NCBI GenBank assembly: GCA_964057225.1
Contig: OZ059899.1
Location: forward strand, 4,774,001-4,838,000
Source: Auanema rhodensis
Lineage: Eukaryota > Animalia > Nematoda
Direction: 5' to 3'
Length of the DNA stretch: 64,000 bases
The first letter of the stretch is position 1. Every line of letters starts with the position of its first letter. The notes beneath the pieces are model-generated. The model was not told the DNA's origin. It worked only from the letters and a program-made list of their open reading frames with translations, and ran no database searches. Positions 1-60,800 of this stretch are shown here, one piece after another. The position numbers were made by a program, and so were the translations under genes.

Positions 1-930
1 AAGATGCTTATGCATCTTCTCTTCACCACATCATTCATTGGAACAATACGTTCGCAACTCTAAAATACAAGAAAACTATTCAGAAAATTAAAAAATTTCT
101 TCTTAGCAAGTGCATGATGTCTTTATGAAAAGATGATAAATGGCGTTTTGTCTTTTATTTCATCCACTTTAAATGAAATCGTTTCTAACAGGAAGAAAAA
201 AATTGAAAACGTTTGTCTAAGTACATATTTAGCTTTGTAAACTTTGACTAAATGAATAGTTTGAACTTAAAAATTTTTTATAAATTATTATAAATTTCTG
301 AAAGCCAGGTTCTCTTGTCAGATTTTTAACTTTAGTTTATTTCATTATTGTTCCACATAATCAACTTTCATGACTAAATATGAGAAAATACTTTTCATAT
401 TCATTGTATCCAACATGTTCTTTGAAACGAATGTCGGAAAAAGCATCCATGTACTAGCTGATTTGTATTTATTATAATCATGAGAACTCAGAAAATAATA
501 AAATTCACATATGTTACTATTACAGCAAGGTTATTATAATCATATTTATGAAGATTTTAGCTGTCTGAATTCGTTTAAGAGGACAGATTCTGTGCAGAAA
601 AGATAGATTTCTTTACCTGTTTATGATTTCTTTAAGTCTGTTCTTTATTAGTTTACCCTATTCTTTATATATCTCATTTCTTTGATATTTAATGATGATG
701 TTTAATCTATAGTTCTTAAATTGTTTTTTCATTCCTCATATCTTTTTTGTTTGAATCAAACCAATACATTCAAAATAAGCGAATATCCTTTTTATCTTTT
801 CGATTTCATCGTTAGTCAATCAAACTTTAATAATCAATAAGTATAATCTCTGATAAGTTACTTTTTTTTTCAAAGCTTTATCCCATGTATGTTCAAATAA
901 GACAAATATAGCAATTTTTTTATTTTATTC

Positions 931-950
931 ATATATATATATATATATAT
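931..950. repeat. (AT)n microsatellite
   Basis: Perfect (AT)10. Similar tracts occur at about 29795-29813, 31938-31958, 46042-46062 and 46592-46616. Confidence 0.9.
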
Positions 951-3900
951 TAGATTGTTTAATACATATGTGGATCATGTTTCAAGTTTACCTAACTAAT
1001 TGACTTATAAGCTTAACATTTATTTTTTTTATAAAATGTCTTTCTAAATTATCTTATTAGAAATAGAATTAGTAGTGAACGTGGACGAAAGTAAAAAACA
1101 GAAAGTATTAGATTGTATGACCAATTGATGCTCACTTTCACTAGTAAGATGCTTCTTGTAGGTATGTCTGAATATTTTGGATTCAGAACACCCGTATCAT
1201 TTTCTTTTTTTTCAATAGAAAGAAAAAATTAAAGTATTATATGTATATGTATGTAGCTATAGATATACAGATAAAACATAAAAACATAAAAGTTCCAATA
1301 TTAAAATGGAGATGTAAAAATTTTGATTAATGCACCTGATTGATCGAAGTTCAATCTCTACTCCGCCCAACCGATATATTATATTTCTTATCAAGCAGTT
1401 CCAAATTTCTGCAGCCTAATGTTCGACTTTTGTAGTTTATTTAAATGTCTTTCATGCTGAGTTTAGCTAAATATATAATGTAAATAATACAACATCTAGA
1501 GGCTTTGATGCTATTTCCAAGTTGTTGTTTCAATTTTAAAATGTAAGTTTAATTCTTTCATGCTTTCCGGGACTTGTAAAGACTTTGTAAGTCACTTTAA
1601 CAGCTTGTAACACATCTTTTCGTTTGTTTGTGATGTTTTCTTTTTTTTCGCTTTTATCTAAGTTAATTACCAGTTGATTGAATGTTTAACTATGATAGGT
1701 AATTCTAACAACTTTTGAGTGAACTGATTAAAACAAACTATTTCTGAATTTCCTTTTTTTTTGTTTTATATAATCTATACAAAACTAAAGAGTTAAGAAA
1801 TCAAATTACTTTGTTTTTCCAGCATTTTCTAGGACATACAGATGAGAGGGCATAACAAAATAAATAGTAGAGAGGGAGAGAGAGAGAGAAAGAGGGGGAG
1901 GAGAAAAGAGAAATGAGATAAATCCTTCTTAGGTACATGTAAATCCAACTCCTAAATTTACTAAAAATCCTTGCTATACCTACAAATCCTATGGGAAAAT
2001 CAAGGAAAACTGCCAAGATCACCCACCAATTGTCAGGAAAGAAGTGAATTAGGATTTCAGTTTTAAATCATGCCATAAACTTTGTTTTTCTTTTCAATTT
2101 CTTACTTAAAAAAAACCTTTTTAAATAGATTGTTTTAATTATATATATAGATATGTATATATATGTATATATGTGTATTCATTTGAATTTACAAATATTT
2201 CAATCAAGATAATAGTATTCAATTTTAGTGAAATGCATATATCCTGTTTGATCTGACTAAGATATGTTTTTTTTTATAATTAAAACATTGAATTACTCAG
2301 ATAATCTGAATTTGAAAAGTTCATCTTCGATTTTAAACAGGAAACTCATTTTACTTCATAGAAAATACACTATTCAAAAAATGAAAACTTTTTTTAATTG
2401 TATGTGGATGCCTGACTTCGTTTATTCTAAGTTCAAGACAAATAATGATTCTGAATCTGAAAAAAAATGAATGAAAAGAGGAGAATAGAGAGAAAATGAT
2501 TTAAATGACCTTTAATAGGTGCGTTAAGATGCAGGTTTAATCAGTGATTGAAAGAAATAATAATTGTTTTTCTTTGAATATCTAAGATTATAGATGTGAA
2601 AAACTACTTGAATTGTAAGCACCTTCATTTGCTCAGCTTTTCAGTCAGACTCATCTAATACTAGTCTTGAACCAATTGAAACTGCCGAACAACAGCAGTT
2701 TGGTAGCCGGTGAAGCATAAGAAGAAGAGTAATGACGTTAGCAGGAAAGATTTGAAATGTAAGAAAAATAGTCATTGATACTGTGTTTATTGAAAACCAA
2801 TCAAAAATTTTATTATAAAATAAAAAAATATCTTTGAAGAATTGTTTTTTGGTAAATGGTTATGTATAGTACTATGTTGCGAGCCTTCATGGTGATGTTG
2901 TGCAACTATGTATATATCATTAAAAGCTTTAAAGACCATTTTTTCTAAGCAGCAATTCAATTTCATTACAAGTTCAATCAGTTCACAATGGGTCAGTTTA
3001 GCTGTATGAAAAAATCTATTCAAATGAACGCTATAGTTATATTTTAAGCTTAATCCTGTTAAAGATAGAGCAAAAAACAGATGTACACGCATCTTTATGA
3101 ATATTTTTAAATGTTTTTCCTTTCATCTTAATGTTCCAATATTTCAATGACATCCGCATTTTATACATTGTACAAGTACATTGATATGGCTAACATACAT
3201 ACATATGTACTTTATTTATTCATATATACAATCTTTTATATCAAATATTATATATATTTTAATATTATATATAATAATTATTATTATAATAGATATTTAA
3301 TATATTTTATTAATCATTATTTATCATAAATTTCCTTATTCAACTTGAGTAAAATCTACAATAATAGTGATGATGTATGAGTTATATCTTAATTCAAGAG
3401 ATTTATGAAATGTGAGAATTTTTTTTTAATATTTCTTTCAGTAATATTATCTGAAATATTATTCAATTTGCAGACTATTGTTTCGAGGATGATTTTCTTT
3501 TTCATTAACTATGCCTCGACATGAAAAATGCGAGAGCACAACTGTAGAATAGCAAGAATTGCATACTTTAGGTTTTCCAGTATTGAACTTTGAAAAAATC
3601 TTTCTGTCCCTATTCATATTTGTTCAAACAAATATATTATAATATAAATAACATCTTCTTTTGTTACATGTATATGTATATCTTAACCATTTTTAGAATT
3701 ATATTTTTAATATTAATTTTTAAAATTCCATTATTTATCAAAATATAGATTTTTATTTAAGCCACTAAACTCATTTTTAATAATCTATAAATTATTTATA
3801 AATTATTTAACAATTTAATTTCTTTTTCTTTAATTATATTTGATTTGTAATTTCTTAATAAAACAAATACAGTTATATCTATCATATCAAAAGTTTAACT

Positions 3901-6498
3901 ATAATATTATTATTTTGTATTTCTGTTTTTATATTTTGTTAGAATAGTTCATTTTTGTTTTTCTCAATCTTCCTATATGATTTATGTCATTACATCATAT
4001 ACATATATGTATTTATCTTAGTATAATTTTAGAATGTTGACACAGAAAAAAAATATTTATTTCCTCATCGGATTTTTTTTTTCAAAAATAAGATTATGGT
4101 CGTTTGAATGAGAGTAGTAGTATAACCTTATACGGTGCAATGTTCATGAGAAGATACTAAAAAAAAATTAAAAAACATATACTATCAGTATGAATTAAAA
4201 ACTACAAGAGAAAAACCACTTAAATATATTTATATGAAGATATATAGAATAAGAAAAAGACATAGATATATCCATATATAATATATTTATTTATTTAAAG
4301 CAAAAAAATGGCTATGTGTCTCTGATATTCATAGCTTCCCTAGAGCAAATCAGCATTAAGCATCAGACATCCCTCGCTCAATCTTACTTTTCTCATCTTT
4401 TCTCGTCTCGATATAATTTTAATTCTAGACAAACCACATCATAGTATGCATGGTAGTATATTATATATTATATAAATTTGTGTATATCAAACTGAATAAT
4501 TGATTTATATATTAGATGTAACTTAGGATAATGATGATTTAAAAAACATATAATTTCCAATAAATTACTAACAGAAGTGTATGGCCCTCTCCCTTTAATG
4601 TTTCCTTCCTCACACTTTTACAACATTTTCTGGTTTTTTTTTATTATTTCGGATTTTTGTTTTACCAAAATATCCTCATTTACTCAAAATGGAAGACACT
4701 TTTAAATCATGTAAGTAATAATTGATTGAAATATAATTTGCATTTTTTAATGAAATTTGTCTCAAAATTTAGTGTTTGTATCAGAAAACAATGTTTAACA
4801 ATATCATTTTGAGAATCAATTTTTCTAGGGTTTGAAAAGAAAAATTTATTGATAAGTCTTTCCCTTATTTTTATAATGTCCCTCAGATTTTTGCAAGCTT
4901 TTTTTTTCCAAAAATTGAATAAAGTCTTTCTTTCCGACAACTTGACCTAAAGCAACTTCAAACACTTCTTGCATAACATCTAGGCATGTATCTTTAATAA
5001 AGCTGAGAATTTTCTTTTATGTTGAAAATTCTTTTTTTACTATTTATTCGTTTTGAATATTCGTTATATCGAGCCATTATTAGGCCAAAAGAAATTTTAT
5101 ACTTATTAAGCTTGTTGCCTGTCGAAAGTTTACGAATCTTCGAATTTACAAACTAAAACTTATTCTGCTTCATGTTTTGAGTTCATTAATTACCCAATAT
5201 CAATCCCACACACCATATGATGAACATTCTTGACAATAATCTAAAAATTTCTGGGGAGCTCATCTCTTTTTGTTGTTTCACTAAAAATTTTTTTGTTCCT
5301 CGTTCCAAATTTTGAATTGAGAAGATCTACGAAATATTCTATTTATTCAACATGTTTGTTTATACAAGTATTCATTCTACATTTTCATATCAAAAAATCT
5401 TTTTTTTTGCGAAATTTTCTGAGAAAACGGAGGTTTTACTGATATTATACATAAGCATATGTGAACATTTCAAGAAGAGAATGAAAAAAATCGAAAACTT
5501 CTTGAAATTTGTAAGTTGAACAGTGAAAACATAGATTTTCTTTTAATTCTTAATTTGTAGGAAGTTTTCCAAAAATAAAGAATAAAAAAAGGATCCTTTC
5601 ATATTCCGTGTGTTTTAAAAGCTGATTTTCTAGAAACGATAAAAAAATGTATTTTTCTCTTGATGCTTCACTTTCCGATTAACTCTAAATGATTCATGAA
5701 AATGTTTTTTGATCATAAAAGATATAATTACAGATAATTAAAGAACTATACAGAAGAAAGTATTTCTTCTGTTTTTATTCACTATTAGCTTTTCAACTTT
5801 TTCTTTTATTTAATTAACTTAGGACATTCTTTTAAAACATTTGTTCTAAAAACAGAATATAACTGGAAAATGTTTTCGAGATTAAGAAGCGAGGCAGTTT
5901 AGGCAGCTTAACTTCATTTTGGAAAAAAAAAAAACTCATGATGTTGCTAACGAACATCAAAATGTTCGTTAAATGTACCCCAGTATATCATTCGATTACT
6001 CTCAAAATAAATAAGTTCATTGAATATCATAATCAAAATATAATAATTTTATAATGAAACAATATAATAAAAACTACACACATACATATATTTGAATTAT
6101 TTATTATATCATCACAAATTATGAAAATGATTTTAAATCAAAGTGAATATTTCAGATTTTAATATTTTAGTCAAATTTGAGCAAATAAGATCTTCTTATG
6201 TTTTTTTTATATTTAAGAATTAGAACAGAATTCGAACTCTCCTCATTTCAATTTTGTTTCAAAATTAATTCTTAGCTTCATTCCTTTTCAATATTACATC
6301 ATTTGTATAATATTATATTTCATTTTGTTTAGATTTCTCTATTTTCTGATTAAAATGGAATAGTTATTATTCTTTTTTTGAAAATATTACATATCTTATA
6401 ATTTCATAATACATTTACAAACTCGTACTTGAATTCATACTTCAGATGACCTTTTAAACTTGTTTACTCTTTCTTCTTTTCATTTGCAACAATGTATA

Positions 6499-6556
6499 TA
6501 GTAGTAGTAGTAGTAGAAGAAGAAGAACATGAAGAAGAAGAAAAAAAGGAAGAAGG
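6499..6556. repeat. Compound (TAG)n/(GAA)n low-complexity repeat
   Basis: tagtagtagtagtagtag followed by gaagaagaa...gaagaagaag. Confidence 0.8.
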
Positions 6557-9500
6557 GAAACACTTAGCACTTATCACTTATACTAGTATTTTCACTATTA
6601 TCCAACATTTTTTATTGTCATTCTTTCTCAAATACAATCTCTTTTTCTAAATTTATCTTCAATTCACTCTGTAATAAGTATTTGATTTAAGTATACAAAG
6701 TACGAAAAGTCATGATTTAGGCATCATATATCTTTCTCCTTTCTGGAAGAAGCTTTTTTTCCCCCGAAAATCAGGTTGTCGAGAGTTCCTTACTTTCTGC
6801 ATCTTCAAAGTCACCCTCCCCCCCTTTTTCGTCATCATCTTCCGTCTCATTCTTTCTCTTATTCGTCTATTGCAGATCTGTTTTCGTTCTTTTATCTGTT
6901 CTCAAGCTCTTGATGTTTATACTTGTGAACATGTTGGCATACTATGATTTTATTCAAATTTTATTTGACAGTAAATGAATATATGTCTCTATTTAAAATA
7001 ATTTTATTTTATATTATTGTATTGTTCTTGTATATATTTCAAATTAATTAACAAATTATAAAACAATACAACTTTATAAGAATCCTTACTTGACTAATTA
7101 CCTTTTTGCTTACGTGAAATATGATAATCCATTCAATTTTTATTTTTAACATTTGAAATATTATATTAAAAGATTATCATTAAATTCCTTTTCTTTCTAC
7201 TAAATCCCCGTGATGCTACTCGTCCTTCAATCATATAGCATCCATCATCTAGCGACACTCAATGATAACTTCATAAAATTTAGTAATTTCTGAATGAATT
7301 AGATTGGATTGGATACATTTCCACTATGGGAGGCTTCATTCTTCATTTTCTTTCTATAATTATTTCATATTAGCTGATATTCATTGCAGTATCCTTCTTT
7401 ATTTTTTAATGTGTTTCAGCAAAAAAAGCAGTTTTTCAATTATGGCATACGTTTTTAATTATTTTTTATTATGATCAAAACTCTAAAGAATATGGAATGA
7501 AACTAAAAAAAATTCTGTTAAATATGAAAGAAAAGCTTTAGTTAAGCGATCACCATCAACACCTGTTCCCTAATTAAGCTTGTGCATCGTTCGATTTAAA
7601 TTCATTTATTTGTAGTTTGACAAATATAATTTGAAAAAGTTACACATTGAAAATTCAACCAATCTACCATACTTATATTCATGATTTTTTTTCTTTATAT
7701 TTAAAAAAAAAAGCCCGTCATGTCGAAAACATTCTTATACTTTGTCCAGTAAATTTTATTAGACTATATATTATAAGACGGAGAGTAAATTTAAGGAAAT
7801 CATTTGTATCTTTTCTTCTGTTATTATTTTGCTATCCGATTAAATTTCCTACATCGAAAGGAAGGAAGCCACTGCAATAGCAGTGACAGCAGTTTTGACA
7901 TGGAAGATCGACCAATCAACTATGTTCGAACTCAGAGATAACAAGTATTGAAATTGAAGTGCAACATCTATTAGAATACATCACTCTTATTACTATACTC
8001 CTTCTATGTGTTTCGATGAATGAATAAACTTTTCTTAAAAGCCAGTTTATCAGCTACTTTATATGTTCTAGCTCACCATGAGATCATATAACAACTATTA
8101 CCACTGATTAAATCGAAATTTGGAAGAAATTCGGAAAGATTCTCTTGAAAAACTATCAATCTGTTATATATTAAGGTTTCTTCAATGAATCCTTTTTTTT
8201 ATTTCATTCTCAAGGAACCCAAAAATTGAAAAGGTTTAATCTATTATATAAATATTATTCATTATATATTTCATATATATAATGTAAAAAAATATTGAAA
8301 CACATATTAAACCTTATAATATATTGTGGTTAAATATAAAATAATATATACTTATAGTTTAAAAAACTAAAAATCTTCTTATTATTACTTTGAGTTGTTT
8401 TTTATTTTATTTATGTTTTCTTATTCATATATATAATTGTTCATATAATAATACTTTTCTTTATAAGAAAATCAAATATCAAAAACTGTTTCTTGAGTTT
8501 TAGAAACGTATTCATAATGTATTTACCAAAAAAAGAAAATATAGTAGAAATTAGAAGAAAAACGTAATTTTATTTTTTGTTATCATCATATATATACGTA
8601 TTTCTATTTAAATATATACATACCTCCCTTATCATTTTATTTGCTTCTCAACATTACTACTTATACAACATGTTTATGTATACATTTCGTTTGTTGTATT
8701 TCTGATGTTGTAGGCATGAGCATGTGAATATCTCAAACATAATCCGTTCTGATATTATCCTTAATGACGGAAATGATATAGAAAACCCGAAATTTATAAA
8801 AAAAACTCTGATCGTATCTGTTTTTTTAATTATTAATCTATATGTGGATTAACTGAATAGTTTAGAATGTTCTTGTTTAAGCTTTTGATTATTGGCAGTA
8901 ACGATATCTCCTTCATGTTCTAATTTGATTTCAATTAGTATATGAACTTATTTTGTTTTTTTTTAAATCTTACTTTGTCACTTATTTCTTCCTTTTCTTT
9001 TTTTTTCCTTGTTCTTCCAAATAGTTGACAACTTTGAACTGAATATCCTTGTTATTTTTCATTTTATAACAATTATTTGTTTGTTGTTATTGTCAACTGT
9101 AACTAATATATTTTACGAATTTAATTATAAGAAAAATAGTAAAAGGGCAGGATGTATTACTCAATACGTATATAGCCATTTTTTCTATTAAATCGCTTAA
9201 GTACAAAAGATATTAAAATTCTATTTTTATCCTGCTTACTACCATTTTTTCAATTTGGTAAGAAGATTTAAAGGAAAAAAACGTAAATAAGATTTCCGGT
9301 ATATATTTCAAGGAAGCATCGACTCTTGATTTAGCTACAAAAAATATGAAAATGAATGAACTTATAATGAAAATTCATTCGTTTTTTTTTAAATTAATAT
9401 TTGTTTAAATTTTACGTTTTGCTTTATTACATAAACAACGATTCAAATAATAATTGTAATTTTAAGATTAAAGTTGATGTCAATCGAGCCAAACTATTCT

Positions 9501-10178
9501 TGTTTTTTCTCATGACAACCATGTGAACTTTTGCTAGCGATGAAATAACAGTTTTTCATTTAATTAGAAGATATCTGTCCTGCTTTTTCATTTTTTCAAA
9601 TTCAATTTGGCTTAAAGACATACTAAAGTTGAAGTCAACGAAATAGGAAAAGTTGTTTGTGAATTGAACGAAATTATTTCAATTAATTTGAAAGAAAAGG
9701 CAACTTTTCTACGATCGGACTGAGCAGTCATCTCACATTCGTTCTTTTCTTTATTTCACTTTTATCCTTGCAAACGGTGCTTGAGCTCAACAAACATATT
9801 TATCATAGAAATTATATTTTTTCCTCTTTTAAAATGCTTAATGTTTTGTGTTGTTCTTATTTCAGTTTTAGTTCTTTGTTACCTATTCTGGATTATCAGA
9901 AGTATAAGTGATTTAGTTCACTTGTAGCTCCATATCCATGTCAAATTATGTGTGTTCCTCTTTTTCATTTATTATAATCAAATTGAATGAAGCTTTTGCT
10001 TACACATGTATGATTACATTTTTTCTTTATAAATCTAGAAAATTCATTTTCTTTTTCATTAATTTGTCTTTTCTACTTTTCTATAATTTTTGTGTTTTGT
10101 TCCAGATTTTCAAATAGTTCAACAATACTGTGGATGATCTGTGTGCGTTGTAGCCATATGTGCTAGTCAGTTGGCATC

Positions 10179-47301: not shown

Positions 47302-50300
47302 ATGAGTATGCTGTTATCACCTCAACAGTTCACCAGATTAAGTGAATATGCAGCTCGTAGGTAGAATATAATTCGGTCTGAATACTTTTTTTTTGAGATT
47401 CAACGCAAAAAGTGAAAGAGATGCTTTGTGAATTTCAAAGGGATGGACGATTTGTTCCTTATTTACAGGAAGATGTCCAGGTGCTTCATTTTTTATTAGT
47501 TTTATTAGGACTAAATATTTTCAATATTTTAGGAAGGACAATCCATTAGCTTTGAAGGAGTTAGGTTGTTTTTGCAGGATTACTTTGAAGATGAACTACC
47601 AGCTGAGATGTTAGAACAGCTTTTCTTGTCTTTTTGTAAGCCGGGGGGGAAAGGTGAAACTCACACAATTAGCAAAAAAAGAATAAAAACATTTCAGAAC
47701 GACGTACCAGTCTCCTAGAAGATGCGTTTCAGTCTATGCGTTATCGTTTTAGCGAAAATCTCCATTCATTAGCCGGGCGTTTAGAACGTTTTAGTCTTCT
47801 TCACTTAGACAGCTCGGGGTCAAGCAGCTCAGGAATTGGACCTGGCTCTTGCAGTCAAACTTCAGGAAGATCACCTTCATCCGTACCATCACGACTTGCT
47901 AAACGTTTAGCAAGTACTGTCGGACAGAGCAAAGGAGCTTCAGTCAAGTCATCAATGGGAATGACTGGATCAGTTACTGATACTGCTCGAATGGTGGCAG
48001 TCTATTCTGATTTGAGAATTCCGTTAAAACCACTCATTTGTACATTATCTTTATTAGAAGCTGATACACCAGAAAATAAGTTGGAGGGTTTGTTTTATTT
48101 AGTTAAAGGAGACATAGAGATATAAGGGTTGTTTTAGTTGTTTTTCATGTTTATGATTCTGATGGAAACGGATACTTGGATAAAGCCGAAATTGACAGCA
48201 TTATTGGCCAGATGATGACAGTAGCACGATATAAGCAATGGGATACAACCGAACTAGAAGAGGTTCCTTACTTTTTGTATTATCATTTTTATTCGTTTTG
48301 AAATTGTTTATTAAGCAATAATTTAGATTTTGCGACAAATGATGACAGATATTGATTATGATAGTGATGGGATTGTTTCGTTAGAAGAATGGAAAAGAGG
48401 TGGAATGACAAACATACCACTTCTAGTCCTTTTGGGTCTTGATACGGTATTAATAAAAATATCTTTTGCATAGTGTTATTTGAATATTCAGTCATTGCAA
48501 TTTGCTGAAATGAAAGAAGATGGTAATCATGTGTGGCGATTAAGGCATTTCTCAAAGCCAAATTATTGTAATGCTTGTTGTTCACTATTAGTTGGCTGGG
48601 GAGGTAAGCAAGGATTGAGCTGCTCACGTATGTTTTATTTTTTAAAATTTGTATAAGATTATCAAATAATGATGAAGAAATATCATATGTTACAGTTTGC
48701 AAGTATACCGTTCATGAACGATGTGTAAGAACAGCTGCTAGTAACTGTATAAAAACCTTTTCAGTGCGTACATCCACAGTAGGTAAACTCATTTATAACT
48801 TTCTTAAGTTTAAAACACAATTTATTGTTCAGAAAAATTGTATCATCATTGGCAAGATGCAAATACAACATCTAAATGTATTAAATGTCATGGAACTGTT
48901 GGAGCCTTTCAAGGAAAACGATGTCGTTGGTGTCATAATTATGTGAGTTATTTGAACTTATTTTTCTCCTTTTTCAGCTTTTTCAATTTTTAAATTAAAA
49001 TTAAATTAGGTTCATCACCGCTGTATGTCTTCTTTGCCACAAGAATGTAACATGGGTACTTTGGCTTATCACATTTTACCTCCAACTCACATTTTTCCTG
49101 CATTTCTTGAAAGAAAATCTTGTTCACATAAAAGTTTTCAACCACATTGTAATAGTTTATTGCAGGTTTCATGTGACTTTGTTTAATCATTCTATATTTC
49201 AATTTTTAGGCGATATCTCCAGGTCCAAATGTTCGTCCTTTACTAGTTTTGGTTAATCCAAAAAGTGGAGGAAAACAAGGAATACGAATTTTACAAAAGT
49301 TTGCCCATATGTTGAACCCGCGCCAGGTTTATGATTTGAGCAAGTTTGGTCCTGAACCAGGGTAGCCATAAAATCGTGAAACTTCAATGATTTTGCTGCC
49401 ATAGATTGGATCTTTTCTCTGCAATTCCGCATTGTAATGTACTAGTTTGTGGAGGTGATGGTACAATAGGATGGGTACTTGAATCAATGGGTATTAAAAA
49501 TATAGAAATTTGAAGACAATTGGTTTTAGATAAAATAAATTTTCCTCACGGTAGACCTCCTGTGGCTATTTTACCATTAGGAACTGGAAATGATCTAGCA
49601 CGGTTTGTATTTTCTGCTTTCTAAGCCGAATTTCATAAATTTTCTGTTTAGTTGTTTAAGATGGGGTGGTGGATATGAAAATGAAAGTCTTCATAAAATT
49701 CTGCATCAAATTGAGCATGCTACAACAGTAAAAACAAGAATTTTCTTAATTGATGATTGCTAATTTCTTTAGATTCATATGGATAGGTGGCAAATTAAAA
49801 TTGAACCTACTGAAAATACTAATAATGCAGATGAAAAGTGGGAACAACCACCGTATACTATAATTAACAATTATTTTTCAATTGGAGTGGTAATATTTAC
49901 TGCAGAAAATTCAATTATCAATTAACACATATTTTGGGATGCTTCGATTGCCCACCGATTTCATGTTATGAGAGAACGATATCCAGAGAAATTCAACAGC
50001 CGCATGAGAAATAAGCTTTGGTATTTCGAATTAGGTACAAGTGAAACATTAAGTGGATCATGTAAAAACCTTCATGAACAAATCGACATTTTGGTTATTC
50101 ATAATGATATTGCGGCTAATTTATAAAAAATATTTCAACAGTGTGATGGAGAATCTATTGATCTTGGTCAGGATGCAAGTTTAGAAGGAATTGCACTGCT
50201 TAATATACATTCAATTTATGGGGGATCTAATTTGTGGGGTAGCAGCAGAAAGGCAAGCTCTATAGGCTTTAATATATTAGAATTAATACCGTAATAGAAA

Positions 50301-50789
50301 CGATTACCTGGATTGTTTCCTATTACAAGGCGAAATTCCGATCATTTACATAATCGAGTTCAAGATGTAGGAGATGGATTAATAGAGGTAATTAACGATA
50401 TACAGGTCATAAATATAGAGAAAAATATTTCCAATTTAGGTAGTTGGATTAGAATCCGCTATCCAAATGGGACAAATAAAAGCTGGAGTTCGAGATGCAC
50501 GTCGTTTGTCGCAATGTGCCACCGTTGTAATCCAGTAAGCATGATTGCTTTATCAATTTTTAAAAAAAATAACTCGATTTAGAACTCATAAAGCGTTTCC
50601 AATGCAAATAGACGGAGAGCCATGGATGCAACCTCCTTGTATTATTCAGATAACTCATAAAAACCAGGTTAAAATGCTTATGGGTAATTATAGCTCTAAC
50701 TCATATCGAAATATTTCATCTTTCCAGCTCCAAAAAAAAGAAACTCATGGTGGAATATAAATCATCAAACTCAATCTGAAGATAATTAA
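47302..50789 (+). CDS. dgk-3: Type I diacylglycerol kinase (EF-hands, two C1 domains, catalytic domain); about 21 exons
   Basis: [97 protein letters not shown]|[23 protein letters not shown]; closely matches recalled C. elegans DGK-3. Confidence 0.94.
49890..49937 (+). other. dgk-3: Non-canonical GT-GG intron in dgk-3 (48 nt)
   Basis: ...ATT GGA GTG|gtaatatttactgcagaaaattcaattatcaattaacacatattttgg|GAT GCT TCG... restores the conserved SIGV-DASIAH. The intron contains an in-frame TAA. Confidence 0.7.
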
Positions 50790-51423
50790 ATTATGAGATT
50801 CGGATACACTATGAATTGCTCAATTACAGATCTCCGAAAGACAAAACATTAATATAATTTAAATTCCATTAGCCATTTCATATAAACTGTTTACCACTGT
50901 TCTTGTTAAATGTCATGCCAAGTATCTCTAATATCTACCATTTGCGAACAATTTATGAAATAACACTTTTCGCGCTCTTTTAATTTTTATGATTCATGAA
51001 CAAATTGAATTAATTATCATTGTAAACGATTGTCAAGTGATTATACGTTAACAAAATTCAAAGAATAACATAAAAACAAAGGAGCATATGAAAACATAAG
51101 TTTGAAGAATTAAGACGTTCAAAGTATCAAAGTAATCAATTATTGGAAAACTGAAATCATTAAACTATTGTGGGAATACTGTAATGGAACTTAGAAAGAA
51201 ATAAAACATGGTTTTTTTGATCCATTACTGGATTATCCTTAAACGAAAGTCCGTAAGTAAGTGACGTATTCATTTTTTATACTTAAATGATTATATGATG
51301 AAAACATAATGATTACTAAATTCAAAAGATTTTATTTAACAAAATATAAGAAATTGACGTTAAATTATAGTTAACATTACGTATTGAACCCCGCCCCTTT
51401 TTGCGCCGGCAGTGCAGGGAGTG

Positions 51424-54400
51424 TTATTTACGTACTTTCTCCTTATAATGCACTTTAAACCAGGCTAATAGCCTATTAAGAGATTCAAACATGATATAGC
51501 GAAACCGCAAACCTTCAGGAGTAACTGTAACAAGATGAATAAGAATTCGAAAACCCTTTAGATGTTTACCTGTGATATACTCGTGCTTAGGTCTACCTGT
51601 GAAATATGACAATACAAATTTACCGGCCCATTCGTTTACTGCTGGGGTGAAAGAGTATCTTAATCAGAATCATATTTTTATATAAACACTGCATTCACTT
51701 ACGGAAATCGTGATGGAGCTTTTCGTTTTTCTTCAGCTAGATGCTTTACAATGGCTTCCATATTATCACCGTATATGTTCTCAACGAAGCACTAAACAAC
51801 AAAATCATGATGGAAGAATTGTCCAACATACCTTGTGTTGAATGATTTCACGAGCATTGGCGGCCATAGGCTGAATCCATCGCGCAAGAATTTCGTTGAG
51901 ATCTTCAAATTCTTCTCTTCTAAATTAACATGTTTATTTATATATTAGTGAAAAGATTATACCTATCCCTCGTTTCAATATAAAGTTTTTTACCAAGCGT
52001 GAATGGTTGTTCCTTTTCTTCCTCGAACACGTCAATGTTCTGTAGGACACCTTCAGCAACTTTCCAAGTTATCGTTAAACGATCAGTTCCCTTGGATGAA
52101 GGACGAATAACTACATCACCCTAAAAAGTAAAATAATGCTTTCGATCAAAAAATTCGAAGCATACTTGTTCCATCTTACTTAACAATCTTTCAGCATCAG
52201 CAAAAGTAATATTATAAAAATTAGGATGTTGAATAACCCGCTTCACCCATTTCGTTTCTCTTTGCTGAAAAAAAAAGATAGATCTTTTATGATCATATAG
52301 CAAACCTTCTTCATTTGTTGCTTCAATAGCTCATCCTGTTGAATGTCTTCTTGTTCTGCATCATTATCCCAGTTAGGATCCTTTTGGTCGTTAGTATCTT
52401 TGTTAAGATCAGACGTTCGGCTAGAAAGTGAGCAAGACATCTTTATGGGATCAATTTTGATTATTCGACACCAAATAAGACCATTTTTCTAGAACATTTA
52501 TATTTTTCAATCAACTTGACCGTTTGAATTACCTGCACTTTCTCAAGGGGGTTTTTGAAAGAATCTGGATTATCACTGAGCATTTTATTATGAATAAACC
52601 CAGTTACATCGTTTTCCAATCGAACTCTAACACCAACTGGAACACCTGGGCAACCACCAAACCGAACATCCTAGAAAATATGCAAATATAAGAAGTATGA
52701 CAATATGATATTTACTTTAGTAGAAGTGTGATTCCATAATTCTTTCATCTCGTGGAATGATGTATGACAATGCTTACATACCAGCATATTCGCGGAATTG
52801 CGATTCTAAAAACAAACTTTAGAAATTATATTTACTAAAACTTCTTACGTGAGACTCATCCATTCGTTCCTCATCGGAAAGTTTTTTATATTGGACACCA
52901 ATAACTGTTCCCAATACTCTCCGACCTTCAGCAAAATACTTAGAACCACCACACAGTAAGGAAAACAGATCCCAAAATTATAATTATAAAAAATATTCAC
53001 CCAATTTAAAATCAACAAACCTCTTGAGAAGGGGGAAAGAAAGGAGCTCTAGTATCCTTGTACCTCTGATTGAGTTCGGCAGCAATGTCGTAAAGAGTGT
53101 CTTTTTTCTCTCCAAATCCTTGTCGTTTCAATTCTTCTGCAAAAGCATCAAGATCAAGATCTCTCAAACGATCAGGTGTTTGAAGAATTTCCTCCAAAGC
53201 AGCGGTTGGATCAGTGTTATCATCTGCCTATTAAAAGTAACATGTTATTCTTCACTTAATTTGAACATTTACTTCAATAGCATCAACTGCCATTTTTCTG
53301 GCCCACTCATATGTTTCGGGGTGAACTCTAGAGCCATCTAATACCTCAACATAAGCATCAGTCTTCTCGGCAACCTAAATTAAGCTTTTTTTCTTCGAAT
53401 TTTTACGAGTATGGTACCTTATGTGCATCTATTTTGATAAAACCTGCACAATTCATGAATACTTTTGGGCCCATTTTACAAAGAGTGACGAGCTTTGTAC
53501 GACTTTCCAACAAATTATCATGCTGTTTAAGAGTTTTCAAGAGGAACCCTGATTTTCTGGGCCCCAAACCAGCAACAAATTGCAATAAATTAGATGAATG
53601 ATTATGTTCTAGGCATTTGTTAACATCGACTCCTACTTCATTGACTTTAGAAATAAGTTCATGACTGAGATACTCAGCGAGCTCGTCCTAAAACGATTAT
53701 AGAACGGAATCTTGACAGTGTAGCACACCTTGTTGATCTCCTTTTGCAGAGGATGAAACGACAAGCACATAAGATCTTCTTCGTGATTACACATATGAGC
53801 TATTTCTATTAATGGATCAAGTAAGAAGCGAGCAAGTGACACAGATTGTCGCAACAAAGGAGGGTAATCTGGATGTTCAGCCTAAGAAAACCAATAAATA
53901 TCCGTCAACTATTCTAAAACTTACAAAAGCTTGTCTGGAATGCATATAAACCTTAGCAGCTTCGTTATTCAAAATCACCACATTTGGTCTACGAGTGATT
54001 GAATCAGATTCCATAAGTTGACGAAGAGCTTCCTAAAGCATGAATCAGTAATCACATAATTCAAAACAAGATCAAAATTAAGAAAAAAAAGCACCTCGAT
54101 ATCTCGTTGAAGTCGGATGGCGTCCATATTTTCTGCAGATAATCCTATGACATGAGGCCGTTTTCGTTCAATAAATTTTTTTAAATTAACAATACAATCC
54201 TACAAAAATAAATTTCTTGAAATAATATGGAGCATAAAAACCTTTTCTCTAGTCATAGAATCAGGAGGAGGACCTCGCTGTGTGAAATTAACTAATCTAA
54301 CATAATCTACAACAGCACCATTTCGATCAACCATAACACCAAAAGAAGCCTCATTAGGATCTGTTGGGTATGATATTGCCATTACTCGCGTTTCACTCTT

Positions 54401-57819: not shown

Positions 57820-60800
57820 ATGGAGGAAGAGCCTGGTGAGCGGACCCCTGCTTTAGGGGGTCAAAAAGCTCCAGATCGTCCGTCCAGAGTACCGTCCATG
57901 CGTGGATCATCACCTCGACGACTACCACTCTTTGAACGTGCTTCTTCCCGTTGGTGGAATCCGCAATTCCGATCGCCCAGTTTGGAAGCGCAGTATTGGA
58001 AATGCTCCTTTTCACAGCTCAGGGACCGTTTTCGTTCCGGATTAATCTATATTTCCTTCGTCTGCGTAGCCTGGGCTATCTATTTGGCCATATTTAATAG
58101 AGCTAGTATTCATCATTGGGTAAGTGCAAATTTCGATTAAATCTAGCTTCCGTACACTATTAGCCGACGACATGCTTAACGTATTTTGATTGTTATTGAT
58201 AGGACACAGCTGCTTACAATTTGCATCACACATGCATTCTTAGAAGCTGCACAAAAACAAATGCTGACTTAAACTAAATATAAAAGAACAAAACATTACT
58301 GATAAAAATTATATCATAAGTGATTGATATTGAGCAAAATTCAAACATAATACAAATAAATAGTTTGAGACAATATGCTCTATTGATAACCTTCTATGCA
58401 TATAATCCTTTTAAACAGAATACTATAAAAATCTAAAAATAAACTACTCTTATTAATAAGGAATACGATCTATTTTTGATACAAAGCATGTACTAAGCTG
58501 AGTTTCCTAAATCAATATGTTAATAGTATATTATCTATTGTTAAAGTTTTCCTCCAAAAATTAACGGAATATGAATATATAAAAAATAATATAGAATAAA
58601 AGTTATATAAACGTATAATATATTATATAATGGTATACATATTGCAGATAACTGTGGTAGCTTTAATATCAACATGCTGCCTGATGCTTGTATTTACTAT
58701 GTTCTCAACACAATATCAAAGATTCTATATGCCAACTTCTTTTCTCTGTACTTTCATAATATCGTTGGTCACACTACTAATATTTTCGGCAGGGTCGGCT
58801 GATGCCTTTATGACCCCTGTGGCTAGTTTAGTAACAAGTTTCCAGGTTTGTTTCGGCTTAGAACACGATATCAACATAGTTATTCTATAGGTTGTAATGT
58901 TGATTTACACAGTTATACCATTACCTCTCTATCTTTGCATAATTATTGGAATGATATACTCAGTTCTTTTTGAAACCCTTAGTAGTAGTAATCACAGTTT
59001 CGACAACATACCATATATAAAGCTGGTGTTGCATTTTGGAGTTCATCTGCTTGGGGTTCATCTGTTTATTCTGACCCAGGTATAAAAATAGACACAAAAG
59101 AAAAACCTAATTACTTATTTTATAGGTTCGCCAGAGAAAAACATTTTTAAAAGTGGGACAATCACTTTTGGCTCGTAAAGATTTAGAACTTGAAACACAG
59201 TTTAAAGATCATATGATTCAATCTGTTATGCCTAAAAAGGTAATAAAGTATCTTTTTATGTAGTTTTACCATCATATTTGTAGGTTGCTGATGAATTATT
59301 GAAAGATGCTTCTGAACTACGCCGTCCATCTGCAAGTCAAGGATCTCATTGCCGAACAAGTAACGGAACTTCCAATGGTGCAAATGAAGATGCAGGTACA
59401 GAATTATTTGAATATCGTTGTTATTATGTTCAAATTTCTAGGCACAATCGTGTTGCCGAATTCCGTGCCTGGGCATCGTAAATTCCGTCCTTTCACTATG
59501 AATCTAATGACTAATGTGTCCATTCTGTTCGCTGATATTGCTGGATTCACTAAAATGAGTTCAAATAAGAGTGCCGACGAGCTTGTGAATTTGCTAAACG
59601 ACCTCTTCGGAAGGTATAGTGGTGTATCAAGCACATACGTTTATATATATCAATATCGGAATAGGGTCATAATTTCGTGTACATTGTACTTTTTATAGAT
59701 TTGATCATCTTTGTCGCCTTTGTGGTTTAGAAAAGATCAGTACGCTTGGTTTGCGAATAAAAGGAAAAAATAAAAAAACGGTTTCATGTTCAGGCGATTG
59801 TTATTATTGTGTTGCTGGTTGTCCGGAGCCATGTGATGATCATGCAAAGAGGACAGTGGAAATGGGATTAGAGATGATTACAGCTATTCAGCAGTTTGAT
59901 ATAGATAGAGGGCAAGAAGTTAACATGCGAGTTGGTATTCACACGGGAAAGGTATTCATCGTTTTCAAAATATTTGTGAAATCCTAATGATGAACTAATT
60001 TAGGTTATGTGTGGTATGGTTGGAACGAAAAGGTTCAAATTCGATGTGTTCTCAAATGATGTTACACTGGCTAACGAGATGGAATCCAGTGGTTTGTTCC
60101 CATGAGTCAAATAGAGCTTTCAAATTCGTAATTAGGTGTTGCGGGGCGAGTCCATATTTCGGAAGCTACAGCCAAATTTCTGATGGATGGGGATTACATA
60201 CTCGAACAAGCTGATGATTACTCAGGTTTGCCTTTAATATATAGATGTTACAATAAGAATCTTATTGACTTGGTGATGCTCTCGATGTTACTTGAGATTT
60301 ATTGCATTTGGAGAGCGTTTTCTGTTCCAATAGGAATATTTCTATCTAATGTTATGGATTCGAAAAATCTAATTGCGTTTCAGGGCCTTATCGAATGCAA
60401 GTGCAAGGAACGGAGCGAAGAGTTAAACCGGAAAGCATGAAGACTTACTTCATCAAATGTAGAGCATCGGAAGTCGAAGAGCCAGTGAAAGTAACAACTG
60501 TGACTGAAACTCAATCGGGACTCTCCAAAAATGGCTCGTTCAAAAAAATGACACTCAAGCAGGTTGAGATAGTATATGATACTCGTTATAACAAAATACT
60601 TATATAGAAATTGGCTGGAAAACTGAAAATGTCTCATACTAATTCCTACCCCGTTCGAACCAGCAATGGTGGATCTCTCCGGATGAAGTTAGCTGAGAGA
60701 AATCGTTCAACTCAACTTCTGGCCAAGGAGGTTTTTTTCATGGAAGATTCATGAATTATTATGTGTTTGTGTTTAGTCAAATTCAATTTGTGTTATGGAG

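Follow-up and report, generated by a model that had tools for sequence, protein, structure and literature searches.

The occurrence of a GT-GG intron in the dgk-3 gene of the nematode Auanema rhodensis raises the question of whether an intron end lacking AG can be used naturally, and precisely, in the expression of a conserved gene. GT-AG introns average 98.3% in animals and more flexibility is found at the 3′ than at the 5′ splice site (PMC7072748). The locus was analysed within a window of 64,000 nts (contig OZ059899.1, positions 4,774,001 to 4,838,000 of the forward strand), to which all coordinates below refer. The GC content of the window ranges from 24 to 39%, and both this value and the sizes of the introns are similar to those published for A. 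rhodensis (32.2% GC and a median intron of 47 nts, PMC6469403). Positions 1 to 10000 are much more AT-rich (24-27% GC) than the remainder (31-39%). A first-pass annotation, made from the letters alone, had described a 48-nt insert with an in-frame stop codon in the dgk-3 coding sequence and had proposed that it is an intron with a GG acceptor; the insert, from GTAATA to ATTTTGG, and its TAA are present in the sequence as described (Table 1).

The gene spans positions 47302 to 50789 on the forward strand from ATG to TAA, with 21 exons and 20 introns of 39 to 68 nts. When all donor/acceptor pairs are scored at each junction against the Auanema protein, 18 of the 20 introns are GT-AG, one is GC-AG and one is GT-GG. 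The exons were searched separately, and only short junction peptides were joined, in local scripts. Individual exons match the Pfam families EF-hand, DAGK_cat and DAGK_acc, and the C1 region aligns with the residues bearing PF00130 in DGK-3 of Auanema sp. JU1783 (P0275, 829 aa), with which the whole gene is colinear by tblastn. The gene thus presents the domain order of a type I diacylglycerol kinase, i.e., EF hands, C1 domains, DAGK_cat and DAGK_acc. Its best full-length relatives are named dgk-3 or DGK and include the C. elegans “putative diacylglycerol kinase 3” (P0271). The dgk-3 exon tested has one match at E ≤ 0.001 among the best candidates scored in the 180.9-Mb genome (G000). In addition, the gene order Trx-like, dgk-3, SPT6 (on the opposite strand) and adenylate/guanylate cyclase is common to the window and to Auanema sp. 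JU1783. The single genomic match, the names of the best relatives and the shared gene order together argue for orthology to dgk-3 rather than paralogy, and the name given to the gene in the first-pass annotation is therefore sound. The colinearity extends over positions 44.4 to 61.0 kb of the window and 7.8 to 23.6 kb of the Auanema sp. JU1783 locus (L007), with a conservation so strong that several reading frames match.

For the junction between exons 15 and 16, a homology-guided search of all donor/acceptor pairs returned only the GT-GG intron or its one-base slides, GG-TG and TA-GG, and no GT-AG or GC-AG solution keeping the frame. The AG dinucleotides in the vicinity offer no way out, as the first-pass annotation had correctly noted: the internal one would produce a very short intron and a frameshift, while use of the first in-frame AG downstream (49987-49988) as an acceptor would remove 17 residues. 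In the Pfam DAGK_acc profile, exon 16 enters at position 11, hence the join neither loses nor gains residues. The intron had been assigned to the catalytic domain, and a GT-GG intron does interrupt the catalytic region of dgk-3, although its precise place is the start of the accessory (DAGK_acc) part. At its 5′ end, GTAATA at 49890 is an ordinary GT donor, and the donors of the orthologous introns lie at the same place, after GTG. Its 3′ end, TTTTGG, departs from the AG of U2-type introns, among which it is filed on its remaining features.

Table 1. Features of the dgk-3 and SPT6/emb-5 genes in the window, followed by the dgk-3 introns orthologous to the GT-GG intron in other nematodes (/, exon boundary).
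Feature	Position	Strand	Length (nts)	Details
dgk-3 exon 15	49773-49889	+		ends ...NNYFSIGV (GTG); present in the X10 RNA contig according to depth arithmetic
dgk-3 GT-GG intron	49890-49937	+	48	23% GC; GTAATA...ATTTTGG
Sole AG inside the dgk-3 GT-GG intron	49904-49905	+		unused; its use would shift the frame and leave an intron of 16 nts; RNA contig boundary at 49937
TTAAC, possible branch site (from sequence only)	49922-49926	+		second A 13 nts before the 3′ end; overlaps the in-frame TAA
In-frame TAA inside the dgk-3 GT-GG intron	49923-49925	+		from the sequence
Acceptor TTTTGG	49932-49937	+		TTTT at -6 to -3; G at -2 (49936; A in relatives); G at -1
dgk-3 exon 16	49938-50093	+		starts DASIAHRFH, position 11 of the DAGK_acc profile
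dgk-3 GC-AG intron	50253-50297	+	45	AAG/GCAAGC...GTAATAG; joint 50250 to 50296 (2-nt ambiguity) in both RNA runs
SPT6/emb-5 GT-GG intron	52972-53020	-	49	GTTTGT...AATTTTGG/GAT; ~3 kb from the dgk-3 GT-GG intron
Orthologous dgk-3 intron, Auanema sp. JU1783			55	3′ end TCTTTCAG
Orthologous dgk-3 intron, C. elegans			89	3′ end ATTTCAG
Orthologous dgk-3 intron, Mesorhabditis spiculigera			65	3′ end CTTTTAG
Orthologous dgk-3 intron, strongylid-like record 1			96	3′ end AG
Orthologous dgk-3 intron, strongylid-like record 2			61	3′ end AG

A single erroneous letter would explain everything at this junction, since an assembly or consensus error at 49936 would hide a true acceptor TTTTAG. Logan contigs of four runs were compared with positions 48000 to 53900 (5901 letters), namely the DNA runs X8 (study P3) and X9 (study P2) and the RNA runs X10 and X13 (study P4), and none of the four carries an alternative letter in this interval. 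In X8, a 651-nt contig (record 7) covers 49409 to 50059 with 0 differences. In X9, which comes from a different study, the depth is normal at the site and no other letters appear. The consensus error of which the first-pass annotation had warned hence leaves no trace in the contigs of two DNA runs from two studies, which carry G and not A. The reads are joined into such contigs without recourse to the genome assembly, which makes it highly improbable that the consensus is wrong by an A>G change, with the caveat that the assembly itself may have been made from these DNA runs or that the same laboratory strain may have been sequenced. Moreover, an identical mistake would be required at 52973, in the second GT-GG intron described below, and this explanation can be considered as largely refuted, with a negligible residual probability. 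Run X9 also displays a 2294-nt skip from 48158 to 50453, and loose ends with GATC at 49412, 49482, 49923 and 52284, at a depth of ~1000; the run resembles a proximity-ligation library of the Hi-C type, and the skip would then not be a real deletion.

The attribution of X10 and X13 to RNA is a guess, and both runs behave as cDNA since their contigs skip stretches of 40-49 nts that resolve to GT-AG introns. In X10, the match of record 1 (984 nts, depth 6.74) to the genome begins precisely at 49937, which is position 330 of the record, with 329 letters preceding it. Because the last G of exon 15 is identical to the G at 49937, this boundary fits the junction GTG^GAT. A spliced model running from part of exon 12 through exon 21 has the same length of 984 nts, has exon 16 starting at record position 331 and reproduces seven consecutive bin depths to two decimals (3.52, 5.10, 5.10, 5.20, 4.07, 4.48 and 2.43), whereas retention of the intron predicts a depth of 6.74 in the bin 49773-49969, in which 5.1 was observed. 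The GT-GG intron is uncovered in X10, and its two flanking exons are both present in one contig. The contigs of X10 and X13 were also inspected for another acceptor at this junction and none uses one, while record 1 of X10 and record 3 of X13 cover 49937 to 50092 without other letters. A search of protein collections, in which records of the species itself seem to be missing, gave no protein that crosses the junction. The boundary and the depth arithmetic, from the contigs of one run, thus indicate the exact removal from the transcript that characterizes a U2-type intron, at precisely the junction that the first-pass annotation had predicted. The 15 joints listed, out of 31, do not comprise that from 49889 to 49938, and the dgk-3 junction is read from the boundary of one contig and depth arithmetic in one RNA run (X10, k-mer depth ~6.7).

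Five other nematode records carry a phase-0 intron at the place of the dgk-3 GT-GG intron, where FSIGV meets DASIAHRFH, and in 5 out of 5 it is GT-AG. A short-ORF search for relatives in which TGG (W) precedes DASIAHRFH gave none close enough to be informative.

The SPT6/emb-5 gene, on the opposite strand, contains a second GT-GG intron, which is skipped exactly in both RNA runs (joint 52970 to 53020, depths of 54.9 in X10 and 34.5 in X13). Within an ambiguity of 2 nts, GT-GG is the sole reading with a GT donor, hence the intron is classified as such. The other SPT6 joints among those listed resolve to GT-AG in 12 out of 12 cases. The context of the SPT6 acceptor, TTTTGG/GAT, is identical to that of dgk-3, and in Auanema sp. 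JU1783 the orthologous SPT6 intron, GTATGT...GATTTCAG, ends in AG. The presence of AG in the orthologous introns of both genes implies that the two GG acceptors are derived, by A>G transitions at -2 which occurred after the split from Auanema sp. JU1783. The suggestion of the first-pass annotation that the species may use GG acceptors naturally in conserved genes consequently holds for at least two genes, dgk-3 and SPT6, both of which have AG in the sister species.

A derived transition could also be a slightly harmful one, fixed in an inbred laboratory strain, with only partial splicing and with much of the RNA retaining the intron, ending at the in-frame TAA and being degraded. All the runs may indeed derive from one strain, and in X13 a 192-nt contig (record 3) ends exactly at 49937 and leaves exon 15 uncovered, which may result from low coverage (depth 3.5) or from a branch of the assembly graph created by some unspliced RNA. 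Rare forms are dropped from contigs, which cannot yield a ratio of spliced to retained RNA. However, a harmful change fits poorly with X10, in which the intron is without any coverage between two covered exons, and with the same change having occurred in SPT6, at a high RNA depth and with no retained form among the joints listed. SPT6/emb-5 is essential in C. elegans. A harmful fixed mutation therefore appears unlikely, and the loss-of-function allele envisaged in the first-pass annotation is, judging from the contigs, ruled out by a dgk-3 gene that is intact, conserved and expressed.

U12 introns, which are removed by the minor spliceosome, are able to end in dinucleotides other than AG. An intron of this type tolerates varied 3′ ends chosen by their distance from the branch site, and a TTAAC located 12-16 nts before the 3′ end of the dgk-3 intron is compatible with such a mechanism. 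Nevertheless, the dgk-3 donor GTAATATT does not match RTATCCTT, the SPT6 GG intron is devoid of U12 motifs, and the orthologous introns are ordinary GT-AG introns. When the donors GTAATATT and GTTTGTTG were compared with RTATCCTT and the introns with the branch site TCCTTAAC, neither motif was found, and a bare TTAAC was present in one of the two introns. Searches of G000 for the U12 (RF00007) and U6atac (RF00619) genes returned no match, as compared with 47 matches for the U2 control (RF00004), but with only ~45 candidates scored in each search this absence carries little weight. Donors that are not U12-like, the lack of a scored U12 or U6atac gene and the ordinary orthologous introns point to the major spliceosome, and a U12-type intron is extremely improbable. 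The U2 snRNA genes themselves number at least 47 in G000, with dozens of full-length copies at ~10.96-11.28 Mb of C1 and at ~9.5-10.3 Mb of C8, many of those on C1 being spaced by ~2.1-2.5 kb as if in tandem arrays.

Taken as a whole, the insert at 49890-49937 is very probably a genuine intron of the major (U2-type) spliceosome with a GG 3′ end, derived from an ordinary GT-AG intron by A>G at -2, and its removal joins the mRNA exactly at GTG^GAT.

How the spliceosome would locate such an end can be proposed from the two introns and from the C. elegans literature, on which the mechanism outlined here rests. In C. elegans, the 3′ splice site octamer UUUUCAG/R is bound by U2AF65 and U2AF35 (PMC4889670), and mutated non-AG acceptors are reported, in work of Aroian (1993) and of Zhang and Blumenthal (1996) referred to by PMC4484395 and PMC10946897, to be used at their original place. 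Similarly, the 3′ end of the dgk-3 intron is most likely fixed mainly by U2AF on the short U tract directly upstream, here a perfect TTTT at -6 to -3, with G at both -1 and +1. In an intron as short and AT-rich as this one, with 48 nts, the short distance probably helps to place the 3′ end. Both GG introns lack an AG within 32 nts upstream, the first exonic AG lies 33-35 nts downstream, and GAT directly follows the acceptor in both. With no AG competing within ~30 nts on either side, the second step would take the site ending in G at the usual distance. TTTT occupies -6 to -3 in 2 of the 2 GG introns versus 7 of the 31 canonical acceptors of dgk-3 and SPT6, with a probability of ~0.05 that both would carry it by chance.

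The closest known system is provided by the mutated non-AG acceptors of C. elegans (Aroian 1993; Zhang and Blumenthal 1996), which, as far as the accounts citing them describe, share with the present introns a nematode host, a very short AT-rich intron, a U tract beside the site and the conservation of the original position. According to the same accounts, these are induced mutations, mostly of the -1 G to A or C (PMC10946897) and often associated with a reduced function, whereas in A. rhodensis the change is A to G at -2, is the sole form that the DNA contigs show (two runs, possibly one strain) and concerns two conserved genes. The likeness to the C. elegans consensus UUUUCAG/R (PMC4889670) lies in the U tract at -6 to -3, the purine at +1, a site adjoining the exon and the lack of a long polypyrimidine tract, while the difference lies at -2, occupied by G in spite of an AG there called invariant, and at -3, occupied by U instead of C. 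The U2-type TG 3′ splice sites of humans (PMC2374985) are also natural non-AG sites of the major spliceosome in which the G at -1 is kept. However, they are alternative sites beside a normal AG (PMC2374985), while here no AG is found within ~30 nts and GG is the sole acceptor seen. Meloidogyne graminicola likewise combines a low-GC genome with introns mostly shorter than 60 nts, and a flexible recognition of splice sites was hypothesized by the authors of that study (PMC7593179). The non-canonical sites of M. graminicola are gene predictions without site-by-site checks (PMC7593179), unlike the present cases, each of which was compared with DNA contigs, RNA contigs and orthologues. We found no literature report of GG acceptors in Auanema, and the present cases stand out by a GG acceptor that conserved genes use naturally and apparently to the exclusion of any other, as supported by DNA, RNA and orthologues.

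AG at the 3′ end of introns is among the most constant signals of eukaryotic genes, and in this species it is naturally absent from introns of two conserved genes whose RNA is still joined correctly. With these two introns, the choice of the 3′ end can be tested in a natural setting, for the contribution of U2AF and the U tract versus AG, and of the first versus the second step of splicing. There is a practical side as well: in this species and its relatives, such genes will be broken or read in a wrong frame by gene finders and RNA-seq aligners for which AG is mandatory.

The frequency of non-AG introns was assessed by chaining the conserved exons between positions 44.4 and 61 kb of the window and the Auanema locus, and by checking by hand the junctions without an automatic canonical solution. 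In this 17-kb syntenic block, ~63 introns were resolved (2 in Trx-like, 20 in dgk-3, about 30 in SPT6 and at least 11 in the cyclase), the poorly aligned stretches 57390-56932 and 58240-58645 lying outside the count. The two GG introns are the only ones without AG and one intron is GC-AG, a proportion that is not an unbiased rate because the block was picked on account of the finding. Automatic calling against the Auanema locus had flagged 20 junctions, of which the hand check, the gene model and the RNA joints left only the two GG introns without a canonical solution. Annotation-free counts of non-AG introns, based on ORF continuity or on codon-usage scores, were dropped as far too noisy or insensitive.

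These numbers bear on whether the two GG acceptors are individually tolerated mutations or the product of a species-wide code, in which the splicing machinery of the lineage (e.g., U2AF35, U2AF65 or a second-step factor) would have changed so that A at -2 is no longer needed anywhere. Two RNA-supported GT-GG introns within 3.1 kb, and the general weakness of the donors and acceptors of dgk-3 and SPT6, are in favor of a changed machinery; on the other hand, only 2 of the ~63 introns of the block lack AG, and no change is needed to account for them since mutated sites without AG are already spliced in C. elegans, the machinery of which is normal. We regard a changed machinery as less likely than not. 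A further reading, itself somewhat short of even chances, is that the requirement for A at -2 has been relaxed throughout the genome, such that any U tract followed by NG at the right distance would be a 3′ splice site and at least 1% of the introns of conserved genes would lack AG. If true, A. rhodensis would constitute a natural system for the study of how the spliceosome finds the end of an intron without AG.

The 33 introns of dgk-3 and SPT6 lying between 47357 and 53728 measure 39-68 nts, with 16-39% GC, and their splice signals are weak, with donors that barely extend beyond GT (e.g., GTTCCT, GTAGCC and GTACCA). Several AG acceptors of the two genes are without any U tract, as in GCCATAG, TCAACAG and GTAATAG, the last of which is that of the dgk-3 GC-AG intron.
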